A stretch of DNA of 64,000 nucleotides, taken from sequence record PV662128.1; one strand, 5' to 3'. The notes below the pieces were generated by a model. The model was given only the letters and a program-made list of their open reading frames with translations. It made no database searches and had not been told where the DNA came from. Position 1 is the first letter of the stretch, and each line of letters starts with the position of its first letter. This document shows, piece after piece, positions 5,224 through 37,929 of this stretch. The position numbers were made by a program, and so were the translations under genes.

Positions 5224-6489
5224 ATGAGTAAATTGTTTCTGGATCTGCTGGCTCGTCAGGGCAACGAAAACCTGGAAATCGAACTGGGTAATGGCGATAC
5301 CGCTGTAATCGTTCCTGAGTCCGCCGAAGAAATCGCTGAAATGGCTGCTGAAAACGTCCTCGCTGAAACTTCCGAAGAACTGGAAGAACACGCCGATGAC
5401 GTTGAAGACCTGTGCGACAAAGTTGAAGAACTGGAAGAGCAGGTTGAAGAACTGCAAGAAGTCGTTGAAGGCGCCGAAGCCCTCCTGCAACCGGGTACCC
5501 AGTGGAACCCTGCTGCGTTCGCCCTGCTGTATGCCCGTGGTGAAAAACTGAACGCCAAAATGAGCGATACCGCCGTTCCGGTTATGGGCGCGGAATCTTT
5601 GGCTGATGCGACTACCGCAGAACTGACCGCTCGCGAAGGCCTGGAAGCGATGAACGCTACCGTGAAAAAATGGGGCACCCAGGCGATCGCGTTCATCAAG
5701 AAAATCTGGGACAGCCTGATCTCCTTCATCAAAGGCCTGTTCTCCAAAGCTACCGCGGTTAAGAACAAAGCGAAAGCTGTTGCTGCGCGTCTGGAAAAAA
5801 CCGAAAAACTGAAAGAAACCATCAAGCTGGGCAAATGGAACGCATTTGCAGGCGTTGGCGAATCTCAGGGTAAATCTGCAACCGGCCTGTCCACTCTGAT
5901 CGGCGCTGCCGGTAAAGTTGTCGCTGGTTCTGAAGCTCTGCTGTCTTCTCCGGGTAATGCTGCCGCGCTGGCTGGTCCGGTTAAAGAACTGAGCTCTGCT
6001 GCAGCTGGCCTGGATTCTGTTTTCGGCCCGGCTAAGAAAGCTGGCGGTGATAAAGCTGTTGCTGCTCACCAGTGGCGTGGTCTGACCATCGCGGTCGGTT
6101 ATTACGCGGGTAAAGTCGAAACCTTCGAAGACGTTGCTAAAGCTGCTAAAGCTATCCGCATCTCCTGGAAAGTTTCCGGCGGTAAAACTTCTGGCGACCA
6201 CAAAGTCACCGACGGTAAAGACGCACTGAAAAAATACATCAGCGACGCCAATGCCCTGGTTGACTCTATCGCTTCTTCCAAAGTTGAAGCGCAGTATGGC
6301 GCGGCTAAACGCGATCGCATCATCGGCCTGCTGAAAGCAGCTGATACCAAAGATGGCGAAGACGTAGGTAAAGCGGTTAACGCAGTGAAAGCTGCTCAGG
6401 CTGCTCTGTCCTCCGTAACGACTTCTGCGACCCGTCTGGGCCTGGCTATCGCTAACGGCGAACTCGACTACGTACGTGCTTGCCTGTAA
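5224..6489 (+). CDS. Abundant inner-head protein with an acidic propeptide (phiKZ gp93/gp95, SPN3US gp53/gp54-type)
   Basis: Very strong high-expression codon bias. Glu-rich N terminus with GNE, GAE, GAE and GLE motifs, then the amphipathic FIKKIWDSLISFIKGLF helix and an Ala/Lys-rich mature part. Confidence 0.75.
   Translation: MSKLFLDLLARQGNENLEIELGNGDTAVIVPESAEEIAEMAAENVLAETSEELEEHADDVEDLCDKVEELEEQVEELQEVVEGAEALLQPGTQWNPAAFALLYARGEKLNAKMSDTAVPVMGAESLADATTAELTAREGLEAMNATVKKWGTQAIAFIKKIWDSLISFIKGLFSKATAVKNKAKAVAARLEKTEKLKETIKLGKWNAFAGVGESQGKSATGLSTLIGAAGKVVAGSEALLSSPGNAAALAGPVKELSSAAAGLDSVFGPAKKAGGDKAVAAHQWRGLTIAVGYYAGKVETFEDVAKAAKAIRISWKVSGGKTSGDHKVTDGKDALKKYISDANALVDSIASSKVEAQYGAAKRDRIIGLLKAADTKDGEDVGKAVNAVKAAQAALSSVTTSATRLGLAIANGELDYVRACL
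5401..5484 (+). repeat. Imperfect 21-bp tandem repeat (4 units) encoding an acidic heptad
   Basis: gttgaagacctgtgcgacaaa / gttgaagaactggaagagcag / gttgaagaactgcaagaagtc / gttgaaggcgccgaagccctc. Confidence 0.8.
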
Positions 6490-13730: not shown

Positions 13731-15073
13731 TACCCGTTAATATTAGTAACGTTTTAGAACAGGCGAAGCAGGTTGCTGCAACCAAACGGCCGACCGTCTC
13801 CACACTCGAGTTAACCCTCATAACCCCGGAATTACATTACCCCGTTCCTAACGTTCAGAGACTCTCTAAGAGTTCTAATTTCTTGGAGGACGGTACGGAT
13901 GTTTGGGCTATTAACTTCTTGATGCAGCCTGGGGTTTTCTTAAAACAGATTCTTCCGTACAAAGACAACTTGCTCGTTGACTTAGTTGAGAGCACGGGAC
14001 TCAATAGAACACTTCGTCGTCTCCGGGCGGCAGTTCCAATGGATGTTAACCCCCAAACCAATTCGGATAACAGCGTTTATATCGATCCCGGTGTGCTGGA
14101 CCAAAACATGGTAGTTCCCATCACACTTATCTTGATCGATACGGTATACGAGCAGTTACGTAACCAACCACTGCTCGACAACTATTTGATGGCCACGACC
14201 AAAGACGTTTTGCATAATGTTTGGAGTCAGCAAGGTCACGCCATCCAATCCAACGGGGTTAATAAGTTTAAAGGGGTCGACATTGAAGAACCCACAGATA
14301 ACCCCAGAGTCTATCGGCAGATCATGGTCAAGCATGGTACACGTTTGACTCGCTTTGCTGACTATCTTCAGAACGAAGAAGGTTTAGGTATTTATACTCG
14401 TGGATGCGGGTCGTTCTATCGAGAAGGGATTTGGTATGTATTCCCTATTTGTAAACCGGAAAGATACGGTACGGTGAAGAAATCCTTAGACATTTATAAG
14501 TTCCCAGAGGATATTCTGCCAGTAACAGAACAAACGTATGGAACGACGGCGAACTCCACGTTAATACTTTCTACCGGGCCGTCTAAATTGCTAGACGGTA
14601 CCGATAACCTGAGGCAGAATTTTGGCGCCGGTCAGCAGATCATTTCTTCGGATGCAATCGCGGGAGAAGCCGGTTCGCACTATAACAACGGGGCAAGCGT
14701 CACACTACGGGCAGAGAAAGTTACGGAGTACAGAACCACCCAACGTGCCTCAGGGCAGGAGCTTATTGACGTCAACGCCACTCCAACCAATAACGTTTTT
14801 AAAGAGATAACCAAAAACGCCATGAGGGACTGCAAGGTACTGGAATTGAATTGGACTAACTCCAATCCTTTTCTCGTTACCCCAGGCGCCCCGGTTAAGT
14901 ACTATTTCCTTAACGAACAAGGAACACTCACTATTCAGGAAGGAACCGTAATATCGGAGCAAACTACGTATTACTCCGATTCAACCAGACCCCTTACCCC
15001 GTTTAGAAAGAACTCTACCTTAACCATACTCCTGCTCCCTATTCAAAATACCGCGATAACCCCGAACAATTAA
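13727..15073 (+). CDS. Putative baseplate hub protein (phiKZ gp101-like)
   Basis: 448 aa. The GLGIYTRGCGSFYREGIWYVFP and C-terminal W-x-N-S-N-P-x-L-x-x-P-G motifs are consistent with hub/gpD-like proteins. Confidence 0.5.
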   Translation: MIPVNISNVLEQAKQVAATKRPTVSTLELTLITPELHYPVPNVQRLSKSSNFLEDGTDVWAINFLMQPGVFLKQILPYKDNLLVDLVESTGLNRTLRRLRAAVPMDVNPQTNSDNSVYIDPGVLDQNMVVPITLILIDTVYEQLRNQPLLDNYLMATTKDVLHNVWSQQGHAIQSNGVNKFKGVDIEEPTDNPRVYRQIMVKHGTRLTRFADYLQNEEGLGIYTRGCGSFYREGIWYVFPICKPERYGTVKKSLDIYKFPEDILPVTEQTYGTTANSTLILSTGPSKLLDGTDNLRQNFGAGQQIISSDAIAGEAGSHYNNGASVTLRAEKVTEYRTTQRASGQELIDVNATPTNNVFKEITKNAMRDCKVLELNWTNSNPFLVTPGAPVKYYFLNEQGTLTIQEGTVISEQTTYYSDSTRPLTPFRKNSTLTILLLPIQNTAITPNN

Positions 15074-15161
15074 AATTCAACATGGAGTTTTTTATGGCGC
15101 TATATAACCGCAGTGTATGAAAAACAAAATGTTATTTTTTAATTAAATAGAGGAAATCATC

Positions 15162-15620
15162 ATGAAACGTTTTATCTCTGCGGCTATTCTTTCCGTTATT
15201 GCTATGAGCGCTACCGCAACTGAAAATACCAACATCTGGGGTTGTGTTACCAACGCTGGTAAAGTCGCCAGGGTTGATCTGGTAGAAGGAACTGGCGGCG
15301 TACAAGCAATCTACACGTTCGGTAAGGCTGGGAGCGATCCTGAGCTCTCCGTTGCCAAGAAGCTCTCTGACGTTAAGTATACCGAGAAAGAGGCTTACGC
15401 CAACGGTATCCTGCAAACCACGTATTATCAGCTGACTTTCAATAATGGTCAGTACAGCTATATCACCGAACAGTTTAACAAGATCGCACGTCTTTACGTA
15501 CTCAAGAACGATAAAGTGATTTCGACTATTGAGTGCGAAGACATCATCGACGCGGGTGTTCTTGACAGCGAAAACATGATCAAAATCTTTCCTTACCATG
15601 AAAAGGTAAAGGATGAATAA
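15162..15620 (+). CDS. Secreted/periplasmic protein with a Sec signal peptide
   Basis: MKRFISAAILSVIAMSATA signal peptide ending in A-x-A, two Cys flanking a beta-rich mature domain, a GAGGA RBS and its own terminator. Confidence 0.75.
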   Translation: MKRFISAAILSVIAMSATATENTNIWGCVTNAGKVARVDLVEGTGGVQAIYTFGKAGSDPELSVAKKLSDVKYTEKEAYANGILQTTYYQLTFNNGQYSYITEQFNKIARLYVLKNDKVISTIECEDIIDAGVLDSENMIKIFPYHEKVKDE

Positions 15621-27430: not shown

Positions 27431-27451
27431 ATTTTTATAAGTCGATATTAT
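27431..27451 (+). promoter_or_regulatory. Putative early/middle promoter of the glycine-zipper cassette
   Basis: atttttataagtcgATATTAT, similar to the element upstream of tnpB. Confidence 0.45.
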
Positions 27452-27503
27452 TCAGGTGTATAAACAACGAGTATTTAATTCTTATTCACTAAAGAGGTTC
27501 AAA

Positions 27504-28076
27504 ATGGAAATTCGTAAAGACATGATCAATGAAATCGCCGCTCGTATCATCTCTGGTTGCAACGACGTGGAAGCCAGTGTCCGCGAAAAGCTGCTGCGTA
27601 ATTTGGTTAATGGTGAGATCTGGCAGTTCGAGCTCAATGAAACTGAGCAAGCGGAACTGATCGCGATCGTAAGCAAAGAGTTCGGTATTTCCGATCTGGC
27701 CTACGTCGAACCTCAGAAAAACATTTCTGAAGAAGACGTCGCCAAAGTCGCTGCCAGTGTTAACGGACATGTCGAACACAAATATCTGAATCTACGAAAT
27801 GCGATGGCAGTCGGCGCAGTACTCGGTGCCGGCGCAGCCATCTTAAAAGAAGGTGCGAACGTGATTAATGCCGGCGCTGGTGTGGTCGGCGCTGCTGTTT
27901 CTTACGGCGTGGGATATCTGGCTGACAAGAAACAAATCGGCATGGGTAATCAGTACGCTGATGTCGCGGCAGGTATTGTGGCCGGCGGTGTTATCGGCGG
28001 CGGTGCTGTATTTGGCGCGGGCTTTGTCGCCAAACGCTTCTTCAGCGATGAAGAAGTTGAAGTTGTTGCAGAGTAG
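27504..28076 (+). CDS. Glycine-zipper membrane protein 1
   Basis: ATG 27504 follows GAGG (track start 27456). Soluble N-terminal domain, three hydrophobic GxxxG-rich helices and an acidic tail. Confidence 0.75.
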   Translation: MEIRKDMINEIAARIISGCNDVEASVREKLLRNLVNGEIWQFELNETEQAELIAIVSKEFGISDLAYVEPQKNISEEDVAKVAASVNGHVEHKYLNLRNAMAVGAVLGAGAAILKEGANVINAGAGVVGAAVSYGVGYLADKKQIGMGNQYADVAAGIVAGGVIGGGAVFGAGFVAKRFFSDEEVEVVAE

Positions 28077-28139
28077 TAAACGTATCTGAAATTTCAGGTA
28101 CATCTTAAATTAAACTATCAATAGTAAGGAAATACGATC

Positions 28140-28532
28140 ATGAAAAAAGAAAACATTGAACTGACTGGCGCTGAACTCGACGAAGCTAAAGCAATGCTGG
28201 CTGTTGATGCAGAAACTTCTCTGTTCGACGACATCTGTGAAAGACTCGGTGGTTACGTAGCTACCGACAAACAGAAAAGTCACGTGAAAGCCGCAGTAAT
28301 CGGTGGTGTTATCGGCACTGCCCTGAGTATGGCGACCAAACCATCTGTCGGCACGCTGATCGGTGGCGTGGTTGGTACCGCGGGCGGCGCTTATGTAGGT
28401 AGTCGTCTCGCTGATGATCTGAGCAATCAGTTCATTGACAAACTACTCACCGCCGATATCGGCTTCGTATGCAGCGCTATCGGCGCATCCATCGGTGGCG
28501 CGTTAACCCCGAGCAAAGTCGAAGCGGACTAA
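28140..28532 (+). CDS. Glycine-zipper membrane protein 2
   Basis: AAGGA RBS; VIGGVIGTAL / LIGGVVGTAGGAYVGSRLAD / ADIGFVCSAIGASIGG helices. Confidence 0.75.
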   Translation: MKKENIELTGAELDEAKAMLAVDAETSLFDDICERLGGYVATDKQKSHVKAAVIGGVIGTALSMATKPSVGTLIGGVVGTAGGAYVGSRLADDLSNQFIDKLLTADIGFVCSAIGASIGGALTPSKVEAD

Positions 28533-28600
28533 ATCATCCAGTTCGTTTCACCATCGTTAAATTTTAGGCAACTCAACATCAAAACGTAAGAGGTAATATC

Positions 28601-28996
28601 ATGGATATGGCAAACAAACCTGCAGTTAACAAAGCTCCCTTGTCAGAAGAAGAAATTCTGAAAATGCTGGCTGGTCACAAATCCACCGATGCCAACTATC
28701 GAGTTGGTCGAATCGCTGGTGTGCTGGGCGCAGTCGTCGGCGGTGCGCATCGCACTGTCACTCAAGGCATCAAACCATCAACTGTCGTCGGCGCAGTCGT
28801 CGGCGGATTAGTTGGATACAAAACCGGCAAGCTTGCGGATGGCTTCAGTGGCCTGACGGGAACGCATTCCCCGATCGCAGATGTCGGCGCATTCACAGCA
28901 GGTTACGGCGTGACTCTGGGCATGAGCGCCCTGGCAGCCACCTTCGATCAGTACATCACACCGCTGTACGAATCAGAAGAAGAAACCGAAGAATAA
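28601..28996 (+). CDS. Glycine-zipper membrane protein 3
   Basis: GAGGT RBS; IAGVLGAVVGG / VVGAVVGGLVGYKTGKLAD / ADVGAFTAGYG helices; acidic tail. Confidence 0.75.
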   Translation: MDMANKPAVNKAPLSEEEILKMLAGHKSTDANYRVGRIAGVLGAVVGGAHRTVTQGIKPSTVVGAVVGGLVGYKTGKLADGFSGLTGTHSPIADVGAFTAGYGVTLGMSALAATFDQYITPLYESEEETEE

Positions 28997-29002
28997 GAAA
29001 GT

Positions 29003-29034
29003 TAACTCCTCTACCCGTAAGGGTAGAGGAGTTA
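29003..29034. terminator. Bidirectional terminator between convergent genes
   Basis: TAACTCCTCTACCC-GTAA-GGGTAGAGGAGTTA (GNRA loop) followed by a T-run. Confidence 0.8.
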
Positions 29035-29053
29035 CTTAATTACTTATTTTTTT

Positions 29054-32017
29054 TTATTCTGGAAGGGTATCGTCAACTTGGAAGTCGTCTTTCTTATTGG
29101 CGTCTTCTTCTGTCGTTGTTTCTTCCTCGGTCTGGTTTTCTTCTTCGGAAGTGTCTGTTTCTGTCTGTTCTTCCTCAGTTGTTTCCTCTTCCCCAGGCAA
29201 ATCTTCCTCTATCGAGAAATCGTCGTCTGTCTGAGTTTCCTCTCCAGAGGTATCCTCTTCAAGAGGTGGCGTACCGAACTCATCCGCCGGAGGTTCTTCC
29301 GCAGGCATGATCTTCTCTAAACGTTTAGCCAGTCGATCTGTCTCTTTATTCCAGACCTTCATGAATTGTTCTAAGAACATCCCACTGTTGTCTACATACT
29401 GAGATATGTTGTGGATTAACGAATAGATCCCTCCCTCTTTGCCCTTGTTACCGATAAGATCGAACGGCATAGGGAGGTTGAATCGGTCATAGAGTTCGAT
29501 CAGATAAGTACTTTTGATAATGGATTTGGATTTTTCAATATCCAGCCCACCGTTAGCATCAACCTTGTTCATGATCATTTCAATCAGGCCTGACGTACCT
29601 GACATTTCAACCCACGCGTTTACAAACTGATTGACCGTATCGATTTTATCTTTCAGTTTAGTTACCGATTCCTGAGTAGCCGGCGTCGGTAAGGTCACGG
29701 TGAGGTTATTGATAAAGTCAGCCAAGATAACTTCAACGATGTGCTCGTTCGTTCCCTCTATTTCCTCCCCAGCATCGGGTTTCCATAGCGACTTGTTCTC
29801 GTTAATGGTATCGACCAAACGATTCAACATAACCTGGTTAACCAACATATCCTTACGTTCGATCTCAGCAACAAAGTCGCCTAATACCTTCTGCCAAATC
29901 AACGTTTGGTTGCGGAGCATTTCCTGCTCAGCCAATGCTTCGACCTGGAAGTTGGTTCCTTCCTCTTTATCGTCCAACCAAGTACGCTGGAGTTTAAAGG
30001 TGGAGGCGATGTTGTTGAGGAGGTTCTGTCTGGAGGTTTCGTCGATAGCTTTAAAGTTACCACGCTCGACCGGCTCCAGAGTTATCTTAGGCCCGACCAT
30101 CCACGGGTTACCGTTACTATTAACCTCAACGATCAAGGATTGCGTCTTCATGGCCTCAACGATATCTGGGACTGAAACAGTACCAGAGTTTACCACGTTG
30201 TGAAGTGTTGGGTTTACCCTGAAGAACTGAGCCCTGGCCATAGCAATGGTGCCGTCCGGATCAACATCGTCTTCTTCCAGATCAACCACTAAACGCTGAC
30301 GAGTTTGAGCCTGATCCAAGTTAGCCAGAATGTCAGCAGTATCCAATGCCGCCAACCGACCGATATGGAGTTTAGCTTGATTAGTTAAAGAAGAACCAAT
30401 ACCAAAGCTATTGTAGTCAAACGCAACGTAGGTGAAATACTCAGCCGGAATGTAAAGCACCCGAACACCCTGTTGCTTGAAAGAACGAGCCAGAAAGATC
30501 TTCAGGTTAGCTTCAACCAATTCGACAGAAATATTTTTCCCACTCACCCCGGAAGCAATTGCTTGGATAAGGGATTTCTCTAACTGATCTTTGGCTAACA
30601 GGGCGAATTCGGACATATCGAAATCACAGTCCGTGCCCTGCTGAACTTTCTTCAGGTTAGCGATAAGTGCGTTGGTTCCGCCCGTTTTATTGGGTGTATC
30701 GATCTTATCTTTCTGACCCTTAGAAGACTGATAGAAGTTAAAGTCCCTTGTGCTTTTTAAGAACTCCCCATTGGACGGATCAAGCAAAGCGAACCCACCA
30801 ATCAGCTTAGTCCGATCACCTTCCATATGAACGGGAATAAAGGCTTCACTCGGAATATGATACCGTAACGGAATTCCATAAACCGAGGTGTCGTAAACCC
30901 CTGGGCTGCGAACACTGATGGTTTGACGATGCGGGTAACTACGGTGCGGATAAAACTCATTCTGAAGAACCTCCAGTTGGCTTTCCGGCAAGAGCTGAGT
31001 TTTAGTATCAGCGTTAGGCGTCCCGTTCTTACGTTTAGCCTTAGTGTCGTCAGGCTCTTTATTCGACTTCTTAGGATCTTCTTTCTTATCCTTGGTCGAC
31101 GGACCCTCTTCTTCCTCTCCCTCGCCTTTTTTCTCCAGGCGAGATTTAATAAGGGAAGCGAGATCTTCCGTCCCGCCAATGTCGTTAACGATCTTCTTCG
31201 TTAAAGCCTGATTTACGGAACGAAGGGCTAACACCGCTGGGTTATCGGTCAGTGTGATACCAAAACCTTCTCCTTCGTCATTCTCGATTAATTCGAATTC
31301 AGTAGAGGTATCTGGCGTGGTGTGGCTAAACAAAGCCTCTAACCCATGAACGACGTTATTGAGCTGTTTAGGACCCCTCACTAATCCTTTATTGATGGCG
31401 AGAAACTTACCGTTAGCATTTTTAAATTGCTTCTCGATCTCTGGTCTTATCTGAGTGTTAATGTAACTTTCGTTACCTGTCACTCCGTCTTCTCCAAACT
31501 GCTGACCGTTGATAAGGTGATCCAACGCAGGTCTAGAGATGTTCAAAAGCACGTAGGACCCTGTGCCGAACAACCCATCTTTGATGAACTCCGGTAACAG
31601 CCTCTCGATTTTATAGTCGCTGGTATAGTAGGTTTCCGTCTTACGGAGCAACTCTTCATGCAGCTTAGTATTTTTAAATTGAGACCGCAAAGTATCGTGA
31701 GTAAGGATCCTTTCCTGTAAACCGTTCGGGTAGAGGAGAAGCGTCTTCCAGATTAATTCCGCCCGCGAAACATAAGGTGTGATTTCCCTTAAGTCAGTTG
31801 CCGCATTGATATTGCTGGCAATGATATCGCTGATCTTTTTTAATTTGGAAGGTTGGACTTTACGTTCTTTCTCATCCGTATTTCTGGTATGATCTCTCTC
31901 GTCCCGAACGAGGTTCCGAACGACGCTTTTTAACGAGGGGCTGATATTATTTAAATTACCCCTGAGTTTGGTTTGATCGAGGTAATCATATCCTCGGGTT
32001 GAACGCGTTCTATTCAT
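29054..32017 (-). CDS. Probable portal protein (phiKZ gp129 / SPN3US gp81-like)
   Basis: 987 aa, divergent from the baseplate gene as in phiKZ-like genomes. Contains YIPAEYFTYVAFDYNSFGIG, G-x-E motifs (TGNE, HGLE, GGTE) and an acidic C-terminal tail. Confidence 0.65.
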   Translation of the reverse strand: MNRTRSTRGYDYLDQTKLRGNLNNISPSLKSVVRNLVRDERDHTRNTDEKERKVQPSKLKKISDIIASNINAATDLREITPYVSRAELIWKTLLLYPNGLQERILTHDTLRSQFKNTKLHEELLRKTETYYTSDYKIERLLPEFIKDGLFGTGSYVLLNISRPALDHLINGQQFGEDGVTGNESYINTQIRPEIEKQFKNANGKFLAINKGLVRGPKQLNNVVHGLEALFSHTTPDTSTEFELIENDEGEGFGITLTDNPAVLALRSVNQALTKKIVNDIGGTEDLASLIKSRLEKKGEGEEEEGPSTKDKKEDPKKSNKEPDDTKAKRKNGTPNADTKTQLLPESQLEVLQNEFYPHRSYPHRQTISVRSPGVYDTSVYGIPLRYHIPSEAFIPVHMEGDRTKLIGGFALLDPSNGEFLKSTRDFNFYQSSKGQKDKIDTPNKTGGTNALIANLKKVQQGTDCDFDMSEFALLAKDQLEKSLIQAIASGVSGKNISVELVEANLKIFLARSFKQQGVRVLYIPAEYFTYVAFDYNSFGIGSSLTNQAKLHIGRLAALDTADILANLDQAQTRQRLVVDLEEDDVDPDGTIAMARAQFFRVNPTLHNVVNSGTVSVPDIVEAMKTQSLIVEVNSNGNPWMVGPKITLEPVERGNFKAIDETSRQNLLNNIASTFKLQRTWLDDKEEGTNFQVEALAEQEMLRNQTLIWQKVLGDFVAEIERKDMLVNQVMLNRLVDTINENKSLWKPDAGEEIEGTNEHIVEVILADFINNLTVTLPTPATQESVTKLKDKIDTVNQFVNAWVEMSGTSGLIEMIMNKVDANGGLDIEKSKSIIKSTYLIELYDRFNLPMPFDLIGNKGKEGGIYSLIHNISQYVDNSGMFLEQFMKVWNKETDRLAKRLEKIMPAEEPPADEFGTPPLEEDTSGEETQTDDDFSIEEDLPGEEETTEEEQTETDTSEEENQTEEETTTEEDANKKDDFQVDDTLPE

Positions 32018-36119: not shown

Positions 36120-36694
36120 GAGAAAAAACGATTATTCGGATTATCGGGACCGACCCCAGTACAACGCACATGGGTAATGCCGTCATTGACGTCAACATTA
36201 CGGAAACACAAAAATTCCAATTACGTTACGTCAATACGGTTATCGGCGACAAGGTCGATTTTTACGAGAAGCTGAACTACACTGAGAGACCCGTTACCAA
36301 ACGCACATTGGGGATGTCAAGATCGTATAAGGATCTCTTAGAGATTTTTGAGCCTGACATCGCCATTTGCGAGGATAACTTCTTAGGGGCTTCTGCGGAT
36401 ACGTATAAACGATTAGTCGAAACCGTTTCTATGTTGCGCGATACTGTTAAAGAGCACAGTAAATCGCTGTTCTTTATGAGCGTTCTCCCTAATCTTGCTA
36501 AGGCTATCGTTGGTGCCAATTTTAAAGGTACCCAAAAAGAAGACGTGCTGAAGGGTTTAAAAAACTATCCACACTTAGATCTTAATGGGATTGACCTCGA
36601 TACCCTCGATGACCATAGCGTAGACAGTATCGTTATCGCGTTATATCTTTGTGAAATGGTCGCAAAAGACTATAAGGTATTTCCTCATGACTGA
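36095..36694 (+). CDS. ruvC: RuvC-like Holliday junction resolvase
   Basis: IIGTDPSTTHMG (catalytic Asp), AICED (Glu) and DDHSVDSIVIA (C-terminal Asp pair). Confidence 0.8.
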   Translation: MLGQKDRIREKTIIRIIGTDPSTTHMGNAVIDVNITETQKFQLRYVNTVIGDKVDFYEKLNYTERPVTKRTLGMSRSYKDLLEIFEPDIAICEDNFLGASADTYKRLVETVSMLRDTVKEHSKSLFFMSVLPNLAKAIVGANFKGTQKEDVLKGLKNYPHLDLNGIDLDTLDDHSVDSIVIALYLCEMVAKDYKVFPHD

Positions 36695-37085
36695 AACTAA
36701 AGCGCCGGGGGATGAAACTACTGAAGAGGACCCGATACTCGAGGTCCAACATCCCCAGGGATTGGAGGGAAAGGTATTTGGTAAATGGACTGTGAGGCTG
36801 CGCAACATCTGTGGTGTGGTTGCGTGCCTTTCGGTTTGTTATAACGCCATCAATTATACCGATACCATAAAGAAAGCGGTTCTAGCAGGATATGGTTATC
36901 CTGACAGAACGAGTTTAGGTATCGTCTTCATCGGTCCGATCATCATCGCCCTTGTTTTCATGAATGCCAGCAAAATCCTGCAGGTTATCATGAAGATTCC
37001 TGGTATAGCGGAAAGGCTACGTAAAGGAACTATCGGGGCGCTGACTCGACCTGGAGATAATCCTCCGCCTCCACCACAAAACTAA
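36687..37085 (+). CDS. Two-TMD membrane protein, holin candidate
   Basis: ATG 36687 overlaps the ruvC stop. Two hydrophobic helices and a basic/Pro-rich tail; adjacent to the spanin candidates. Confidence 0.45.
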   Translation: MTETKAPGDETTEEDPILEVQHPQGLEGKVFGKWTVRLRNICGVVACLSVCYNAINYTDTIKKAVLAGYGYPDRTSLGIVFIGPIIIALVFMNASKILQVIMKIPGIAERLRKGTIGALTRPGDNPPPPPQN

Positions 37086-37136: not shown

Positions 37137-37670
37137 TTATTTTTGCTCGGTAGTCGTCGAAGAAGTGACTTTTGTTACAACAGATTTAGTCGCTGCTTTG
37201 GCCTTGGTCATTAGGAATTGAGGATCAAAGACATTGACCGTCCCTGAAGCTTGATCGACAATTTGATCGATGTTGCTGAGCAGTCCCTTAATGGCGACTT
37301 GCGAACCATAAACCAAATCATTAGCGTTATCTAAATCCCTCGTAGTCGTAATAAGTTTTAAACGAGTGAGTTTGTAGCATCTGGTGTAATCGGTGTTCTG
37401 ATCCAGGCAGTCGTTTTCTTTAAGCCATTCATCGAGTACGATGAGTTGACTAATGGGTTCTACCGGGTTATCAGAGATTAGCTCCTTAGGAACAGAATGG
37501 GCGGCTTCTTTCAATTCCTGAAGGTTGATTCCCATGCTACTGACTTGAGCGGCTTGAGCTTCCACCTGAAGTTTGGTGTTGGCTTCGCTGACTGTTGTTT
37601 TGTGGCTGCACCCCGTCATTAAGATCATCAGCCCCATAACGACTAAGCATTTCATTGTATGTTTTTTCAC
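37137..37670 (-). CDS. Lipoprotein, o-spanin (Rz1-like) candidate
   Basis: Basic N terminus, hydrophobic stretch and a lipobox-like LMTG-C; overlaps the upstream TM gene by 134 nt in another frame. Confidence 0.65.
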   Translation of the reverse strand: MKKHTMKCLVVMGLMILMTGCSHKTTVSEANTKLQVEAQAAQVSSMGINLQELKEAAHSVPKELISDNPVEPISQLIVLDEWLKENDCLDQNTDYTRCYKLTRLKLITTTRDLDNANDLVYGSQVAIKGLLSNIDQIVDQASGTVNVFDPQFLMTKAKAATKSVVTKVTSSTTTEQK

Positions 37671-37929
37671 GATCTTGACCTCGGCGATCTAACATAAGAG
37701 CAAGTTGAGCGTTGAGCTTAGTTTGGTTAGCCGTCGCAATATCAATGGCCTCCCGTAAGCTCTTCATTTGATCGGTGACTTTCGCCATCTGAGCAACGGT
37801 TTCTTGGTCAACACTATCCTTAGGGAAGAAACGATTGATCCCAACGATAATCATAATGATCAATAATAATAAAATAACGATCCCATCTTTAACTACACTT
37901 CCGACATTATCTTTAGTAATAACCGACAT
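37537..37929 (-). CDS. i-spanin (Rz-like) candidate
   Basis: Single N-terminal TMD (GIVILLLLIIMIIVGI) followed by a periplasmic coiled coil, overlapping a lipoprotein gene. Confidence 0.65.
   Translation of the reverse strand: MSVITKDNVGSVVKDGIVILLLLIIMIIVGINRFFPKDSVDQETVAQMAKVTDQMKSLREAIDIATANQTKLNAQLALMLDRRGQDREKTYNEMLSRYGADDLNDGVQPQNNSQRSQHQTSGGSSSRSSQ

Follow-up and report, generated by a model that had tools for sequence, protein, structure and literature searches.

Why does a nucleus-forming jumbo phage encode three small glycine-rich proteins side by side, next to its portal gene? We addressed this question for three tandem genes, here called P1, P2 and P3, in a 64,000-nucleotide (nt) stretch of sequence record PV662128.1 (the window; window position equals record position minus 62000, and positions below are window positions unless stated otherwise). 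The region matches Raoultella phage VB_ZK_P1, the phage of this record, at 100% identity; Klebsiella phages Miami, KPN8, YC1 and phiKp_32 and Stenotrophomonas phage BUCTxx100 follow at 93–95%. Because its genome carries a gene for the nuclear shell protein chimallin (phrog_4795, E 6e-100), VB_ZK_P1 is a nucleus-forming jumbo phage, and it is a Miami-like chimallivirus. We find that P1–P3 belong to a real and uncharacterised family of small glycine-zipper proteins that is restricted to one chimallivirus clade, and that the three genes constitute an autonomous transcription unit. Tentatively, we propose that their products form an early, abundant hetero-oligomeric membrane complex acting on the host envelope.

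Three tandem paralogs of one architecture

A first-pass annotation, made from the letters of the window alone, had described three consecutive genes on one strand for proteins of about 190, 130 and 131 amino acids (aa), a description on which the open reading frames (ORFs) and the GenBank annotation agree (Table 1). The three ORFs are annotated identically in VB_ZK_P1 and Miami and are labelled hypothetical in all records checked. Each is preceded by a strong ribosome-binding site, which for P1 is AAAGAGG at 27491–27497. A longer, GTG-started P1 ORF has its start within the promoter element described below, is used by no annotation and is backed by no ortholog. Glycine, alanine and valine make up 35–40% of each protein, and the GC content of the genes is 0.51–0.54, compared with 0.446 for the window.

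As single sequences, P1–P3 match one another weakly in BLASTP (E 0.002 and 0.003, and 3.8 for P1 versus P2). We gathered orthologs by running a profile of P1–P3 against 1.84 billion representative proteins, and compared profiles of the resulting groups A3 (P1), A4 (P2) and A5 (P3). These profiles match one another with hhalign probabilities of 97–98% (E 1e-10 to 2e-13) over 90–102 collinear columns, scoring 62–70 as against 17–34 for reversed profiles and 11 ± 2 (maximum 19) for column-shuffled ones. Because the real scores exceed those of both controls, composition alone fails to explain the match. With the hidden Markov model (HMM) of each group, the other two paralogs are the sole matches among the 1523 ORF segments of the whole genome. 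The profiles thus identify P1, P2 and P3 as true paralogs, as the first-pass annotation had claimed from their shared layout. A further gene that resembles them by eye, gene 151, was considered as a fourth paralog and ruled out, as no family HMM detects it.

The ratio of nonsynonymous to synonymous change (pN/pS) against Miami is 0.044 for P1, 0.096 for P2 and 0.139 for P3, values that indicate purifying selection. Low-complexity ORFs arisen by chance, or three genes that are unrelated but alike in composition, would account for the BLASTP E value of 3.8 between P1 and P2. That reading is refuted by the reversed and shuffled profile controls and the specific genome cross-matches, together with pN/pS values of 0.04–0.14, strong ribosome-binding sites and orthologs in divergent lineages, and we give it practically no weight.

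Each of the three proteins contains the three small-xxx-small-rich helical stretches and the acidic tail that had been noted in the window. Across 14 family members, the small-residue columns have an i+4 periodicity (autocorrelation 0.42 at lag 4), and the columns with at least 11 of 14 G/A/S residues fall, in P3 numbering, at 40/44/47, 60/64/68/72/76 and 96/103/107. This small-xxx-small (GxxxG) periodicity, in helices joined by a short turn, is what characterises the Pfam glycine-zipper families. The three helices are nearly free of charged residues in all 14 members, with charges placed in loops and termini, and a G-K/R-L-A-D loop following helix 2 is kept in 12 of the 14. Two landmark motifs had been described for the trio, G-[YSK]-LAD and AD-[VI]-[AG]. 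Both are present in all three proteins, as GYLAD, SRLAD and GKLAD and as ADVA, ADIG and ADVG, but the first pattern suits P2 only if one extra residue is allowed. An AlphaFold2 (AF2) model of P3 built from the 14 family sequences has a predicted local distance difference test (pLDDT) score of 73.5 and places helices at residues 35–55, 59–86 and 91–127; a model of P1 from three sequences (pLDDT 48) was too low for use.

An old family within one chimallivirus clade

The search of the 1.84 billion proteins returned just ten matches, all of them P1-, P2- or P3-like genes of further phages. Single sequences run by tblastn against 50,697 phage records detected seven Miami-like genomes only; a word-indexed protein search gave one match for P3 and, for the P1 N-terminal domain, close kin only; and a scan of IMG/VR found no relatives of the family. 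The long-short-short trio occurs in the same place in four metagenomic lineages (L015/L016, L017, L018/L019 and L020), with portal identities to VB_ZK_P1 of 76% in L015 and 56% in L017. Every lineage having the trio retains all three copies, and the conservation of order and of all copies across four lineages matches what is predicted for a hetero-oligomer of non-redundant subunits.

Beyond these lineages, family HMMs and profiles identified Erwinia phage RisingSun gp87 as P3-like (probability 90%, E 2e-6) and Vibrio phage pTD1 BAW98266 as P2-like (probability 90%, E 1.5e-6), with a weaker signal for BAW98267. As pTD1 has two copies and RisingSun one, the triplication is old. These comparisons indicate that the family itself is old within a single clade (Miami, RisingSun and pTD1), in which its copy number is 1, 2 or 3. 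No member was found at the syntenic locus of Goslar, RAY, 201phi2-1 or the EL-like HHBS47_1, where the genes are unrelated; the family is therefore not among the genes present in all nucleus-forming phages, which make up the Chimalliviridae core genome.

The surroundings of the trio comprise an RNA-polymerase subunit gene, a 797-aa gene, a 211-aa gene and a convergent portal-type gene, whose 987-aa product is a homolog of phiKZ gp129, EL gp103 and 201phi2-1 gp214. The order of RNA-polymerase subunit, ~800-aa protein, small gene or genes and convergent portal-type gene recurs in RisingSun, Kc263, Yubaba, AH04, ZPAH34, D9, Goslar and RAY and is broken in pTD1, 201phi2-1 and HHBS47_1. In every chimallivirus examined, the pre-portal slot holds small, mostly unrelated genes. 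The cassette had been taken to interrupt the core gene order, and other phages do have different small genes at this point, but the slot is a variable one. Because single- and double-copy relatives occupy the same slot in Risingsunvirus and Tidunavirus, the trio is no recent insert.

In Kc263, Yubaba, AH04, ZPAH34 and D9, the portal-adjacent proteins have an acidic N-terminus, three apolar stretches rich in G/A/V/S and an acidic tail (loci L006–L010 in Table 1). Homology to the trio was looked for and not detected, the scores being no better than those of reversed controls. We treat them only as positional analogues, which could reflect either extreme divergence or convergent recruitment. A separate observation concerns the 211-aa gene upstream of the cassette (26726–27361), which is fast-evolving (pN/pS 0.22 against Miami) and, unlike the conserved trio, is not conserved in the metagenomic relatives, two of three of which have unrelated genes there.

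Table 1 Features of the cassette, its promoter class and the portal-adjacent genes of other phages (window positions, except for loci L006–L010, which are numbered within each locus)
Feature	Position	Strand	Description
P1	27504..28076	+	190 aa; helical N-terminal domain (~residues 1–95), three G/A/V-rich helices, acidic tail
P2	28140..28532	+	130 aa; short acidic N-terminus, three glycine-zipper helices, short acidic tail
P3	28601..28996	+	131 aa; architecture as P2; tail ESEEETEE
Promoter element	27416..27466	+	51 nt; blocks AACATG, TTATAA, CGATAT and GTGTATAA; ends 38 nt before P1 start codon
Second strong promoter copy	15073..15123	+	39 nt before gene 15162–15620
Upstream intrinsic terminator	27366..27421	+	Left boundary; hairpin and T-rich tail; RNA fold −25.6 kcal/mol, z −4.3
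Bidirectional terminator	29003..29055	both	14-bp stem, then T run on + strand; common with convergent portal-type gene
Portal-adjacent gene, L006	8938–9552	− (in locus)	
Portal-adjacent gene, L007	7941–8639	− (in locus)	
Portal-adjacent gene, L009	7901–8446	− (in locus)	
Portal-adjacent gene, L008	7881–8408	− (in locus)	
Portal-adjacent gene, L010	8263–9114	− (in locus)	

No described system matches the trio

Family members repeatedly, although weakly, touched only the glycine-zipper families. Each of the Pfam glycine-zipper models was touched by 3–5 of the 14 members, and none of the best scores reached the gathering cut-off (PF13441, Gly-zipper_YMGG, 24.3 bits for P2 versus 28.9; PF13488, Gly-zipper_Omp, 22.2 versus 25; PF05433, glycine zipper 2TM/Rick_17kDa_Anti, 17.5 versus 24.2 bits). 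The NCBIfam model YiaD_Gzip_OmpA scored 20 bits against a cut-off of 175, through its zipper segment only. Searches of PHROGs, PADLOC, Rfam and a PDB sequence profile returned nothing significant for the trio, and Foldseek of the P3 model against the PDB gave no match (best E 2.3). In a fold search of BFVD, the hits beyond relatives were sub-significant holins, LydA-type and others (E 0.3–1, probability 0.6–0.96); the search also returned the 118-aa EL protein Q2Z0Z9 (E 8e-3). The first-pass annotation could name no described system matching the trio, and none emerged at significance from Pfam, PHROG, NCBIfam, PADLOC, PDB or Foldseek.

With the glycine-zipper envelope domains of Pfam (PF13441, PF13488 and PF05433; YiaD and the SlyB/PCP lipoproteins), the trio has in common two short helices, a tight turn and G/A/S at every fourth position. 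It differs from them in its third zipper helix, the conserved G-K/R-L-A-D loop and the acidic tail, and in being phage-encoded, in three paralogous copies, without an OmpA or beta-sandwich domain. Whereas the glycine-zipper lipoproteins carry a signal peptide and a lipobox, the N-termini of the trio are hydrophilic, acidic and leaderless. The glycine-zipper pore toxins, such as Tse4 and the class II bacteriocins, likewise have GxxxG-rich helices, and P2 touches Bacteriocin_IIc (E 0.03), but the trio lacks a secretion leader and would act from inside the infected cell. Neither Tse4 nor any other named pore toxin was returned by the PDB, Pfam or fold searches, and no relationship to them is supported.

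A functional parallel is offered by Imm and Sp of phage T4, small, early and abundant proteins that act at the host envelope in T-even exclusion. The likeness would lie in the promoter class of the trio, common to signal-peptide and small transmembrane (TM) proteins, from which early timing and an envelope location are inferred. No homology to a described exclusion protein of the Imm/Sp kind was found in PHROG, Pfam or NCBIfam.

An autonomous unit with a conserved promoter element

The trio is an autonomous transcription unit that runs from a terminator through a phage promoter and the three genes to a bidirectional terminator. The promoter that the first-pass annotation had ascribed to the cassette is a 51-nt element conserved among divergent relatives: its blocks are near-invariant in five lineages whose cassette proteins share only 25–45% identity. 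A position weight matrix, scanned piece by piece over the genome, located six strong copies including that of the cassette and about six weaker or half copies. Besides the two strong copies in the window (Table 1), strong copies lie at PV662128.1 record positions 28103, 132012, 153291 and 197184, and weaker ones at 2842, 7599, 22230, 161985, 181341 and 202368. Every copy lies on the coding strand, and the distance from the end of a strong copy to a start codon is 25–45 nt.

The genes behind these copies suggest a common theme. Gene 15162–15620 encodes a 152-aa product with an N-terminal Sec-type signal peptide, another strong copy precedes a gene for a 41-aa one-TM protein followed by one for a protein with a hydrophobic N-terminus, and behind the remaining strong copies are genes for a 71-aa two-TM protein, a 138-aa protein with G/A-rich helices and a helix-turn-helix protein. 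Chimallin is preceded by a half copy of the element, and another signal-peptide protein by a weaker or half copy. As about 13% of window genes pass the same hydrophobicity threshold, the three to four envelope-type proteins behind five other strong sites amount to a modest, small-number enrichment. The promoter class may define an early ‘envelope’ regulon.

In phiKZ, TATG marks the start site of late promoters, and early promoters have an AT-rich stretch around −10 (PMC7598289). TATG is found upstream of the capsid gene and several structural genes of VB_ZK_P1, and the P1 promoter has TTATAA in all five lineages at the place where the copy before gene 15162–15620 has TATG. The absence of the late TATG and the likeness to the chimallin upstream region together suggest a non-late class for the P1 promoter, with early expression of the unit probable. 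The sharing of this class with chimallin and with small envelope-directed proteins favours the early-acting roles listed in the first-pass annotation over late ones. We consider a sigma-70 reading of the same sequence (TTAACA-18-GATATT) less probable than a phage-polymerase promoter, since conservation extends to the spacer and downstream blocks and since phiKZ-type phages are independent of the host polymerase (PMC7598289). When exact k-mers were searched for a general motif of early promoters, terminator stems were all that emerged.

Strong hairpins do flank the cassette on both sides, as had been noted, but they are ordinary terminators of a genome-wide family and no special insulator. The upstream terminator belongs to the preceding operon; the Miami annotation has none here and only the downstream one, and L015, L017 and L020 have a hairpin in the corresponding position whose stem differs in sequence. 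The downstream terminator folds on both strands (−27.5 kcal/mol, z −7.0, on the + strand; −26.1 kcal/mol, z −7.4, on the − strand), is annotated in Miami and recurs in L015 and L017. Throughout the genome, terminator stems belong to one sequence family, whose top 10-mer core, GGGAGTAGGA, is present 17 times; related stems lie at 27366–27401 and 29003–29034. phiKZ likewise has a conserved terminator motif (bioRxiv 10.1101/2023.10.13.562163). A promoter and a terminator of its own are the marks of an autonomous, moron-like phage module; compared with a typical moron, the trio is conserved across genera and lacks a deviant low GC content.

Codon usage points to high expression

With relative adaptiveness derived from the capsid gene and the internal head protein gene, the codon adaptation index (CAI) of P2, P1 and P3 ranks third, fourth and seventh among the 39 window genes. 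CTG supplies 58% of leucine codons in the trio versus 18% in the remaining genes, and GGT and GGC together supply 92% versus 56% of glycine codons. The high-expression codons reported in the first-pass annotation are confirmed and are no artefact of amino-acid composition, and the codon usage leads us to infer a high expression level. As an observation apart from the trio, codon bias in the window peaks in the internal head protein gene (5224–6489; phiKZ_IP, E 4e-48), which exceeds the major capsid gene in this respect.

High expression would also suit virion components, that is, abundant small proteins of the head or the ejection apparatus, which might for example enter the host membrane at DNA delivery. 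The unit does lie inside the structural gene region, adjoining the portal-type gene, and its codon bias resembles that of the capsid and internal head proteins. Yet it is transcriptionally separate from its structural neighbours, its promoter class also stands in front of non-structural early-type genes, and the family is absent at the locus in Goslar, RAY, 201phi2-1 and the EL-like phage. RisingSun gp87 is also missing from the 31 proteins detected by mass spectrometry of a lysate, a weak argument since the portal went undetected too (PMC6034870). Taken together, these observations make a virion role improbable.

A candidate membrane complex acting on the host envelope

The tentative proposal of a hetero-oligomeric membrane complex depends on how the proteins relate to the membrane. 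The first-pass annotation had called them membrane proteins. Their charge-free helices and their affinities, which are only to membrane-associated zipper domains, speak for this, but hydrophobicity is borderline and insertion unproven. G/A-rich helices of this kind need partners or insertases, and a marginal hydrophobicity is for that reason compatible with insertion. Uncharged helices with charges only in loops and termini are also unlike the surface of a soluble monomeric bundle. From these sequence properties, we consider insertion of the trio proteins into a membrane fairly likely.

A soluble helical hetero- or homo-oligomer, packed through its small-residue faces in the cytoplasm or on the phage nucleus, would explain why physical hydrophobicity scales predict no autonomous membrane insertion, and it agrees with the compact three-helix unit of the AF2 model and with a promoter common to chimallin. 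It sits poorly with the 14 sequences, in which almost no charged or strongly polar residue falls on any helix face, an unusual property for a soluble surface, and with family affinities that point only to membrane-associated glycine-zipper domains. The family is moreover absent from most chimalliviruses and is therefore no general part of the nuclear shell. A soluble assembly is, in our view, quite unlikely.

In the membrane complex that we propose, the unit would be expressed at a high level and early, or at least not late. The acidic N-terminus of each protein would stay cytoplasmic, with the three uncharged helices buried in the host inner membrane, where the conserved i+4 small-residue faces would let helices of three different subunits pack into a hetero-oligomer. 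The complex would then alter the envelope early in infection, its most likely effect being a small pore or block that changes membrane permeability, or the exclusion of a second infecting phage. In a more specific form of this proposal, the hetero-oligomer would be a channel or seal, either of the inner membrane or of the early infection vesicle, and would belong to an immediate-early ‘envelope regulon’ marked by the long common promoter element. If this form were true, such a regulon would give the clade command of membrane permeability or a means of excluding competing phages, but at this level of detail we consider the scenario unlikely.

Several results weigh against the proposed complex. 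The 19-residue Kyte–Doolittle maxima are marginal (about 1.2–1.9; P1 1.88, P2 1.51, P3 1.29), the summed biological-scale free energies are positive (+2.5 to +9 kcal/mol), helices 1 and 2 hold just 12–16 uncharged residues, and P1–P3 have neither signal peptide nor lipobox. Early timing derives only from the likeness of the promoter to the chimallin upstream region and from the absent TATG, just six sites underlie the excess of envelope proteins among the genes that follow the element, and no significant sequence or fold match in the PDB profile, PADLOC, Foldseek PDB or BFVD searches backs any particular activity.

Some of the same features recall lysis proteins. Like class I holins and antiholins, which have three TM domains, the trio proteins are small and combine three hydrophobic helices with a charged C-terminal tail, and they have a weak fold resemblance to proteins of this kind, which oligomerise in the inner membrane. 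A lysis-timing trio would consist of a holin and antiholin-like paralogs that build up in the inner membrane before opening it to the endolysin; it draws on the sub-significant BFVD holins described above and on the one of 14 members that touches Phage_holin_5_1 (E 0.025). All holin matches are insignificant, however, and PHROGs contributed no holin. The trio further departs from class I holins in its acidic rather than basic tail and its hydrophilic N-terminus of 35–95 residues. No endolysin or spanin genes were found in the neighbourhood, and the promoter, without the late TATG, resembles that of chimallin. The window also holds other small membrane-anchored candidates, at 36687–37085 and 37537–37929. 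We therefore judge a lysis function unlikely.

Implications and other features of the window

Our search of the chimallivirus literature turned up no phage-encoded membrane protein, and we know of no phage-encoded membrane components for the lipid-bound early stage of chimallivirus infection. As a conserved, probably abundant and probably early family that comes in sets of one to three paralogs, the trio and its relatives are candidates for envelope functions in the Miami, RisingSun and pTD1 clade. The 51-nt element provides a sequence handle on one temporal gene class in phages that lack transcript maps. The immediate importance is moderate, as the family is narrow and its function inferred.

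Two further observations concern other parts of the window. The small genes at 36687–37085 (+ strand) and 37537–37929 (− strand) adjoin a RuvC-like resolvase gene and encode proteins with one strongly hydrophobic segment each, which in the product of 37537–37929 is an N-terminal anchor followed by a long, polar helical region. Both belong to PHROG families without known function and could be lysis or other envelope proteins. Directly after the major capsid gene lies a transposase gene (20177–21316; 379 aa, phrog_506, E 1e-112) with a GC content of 0.35, compared with 0.45 for the window; Miami has no gene at this spot, and the transposase looks like a recent insertion in VB_ZK_P1.

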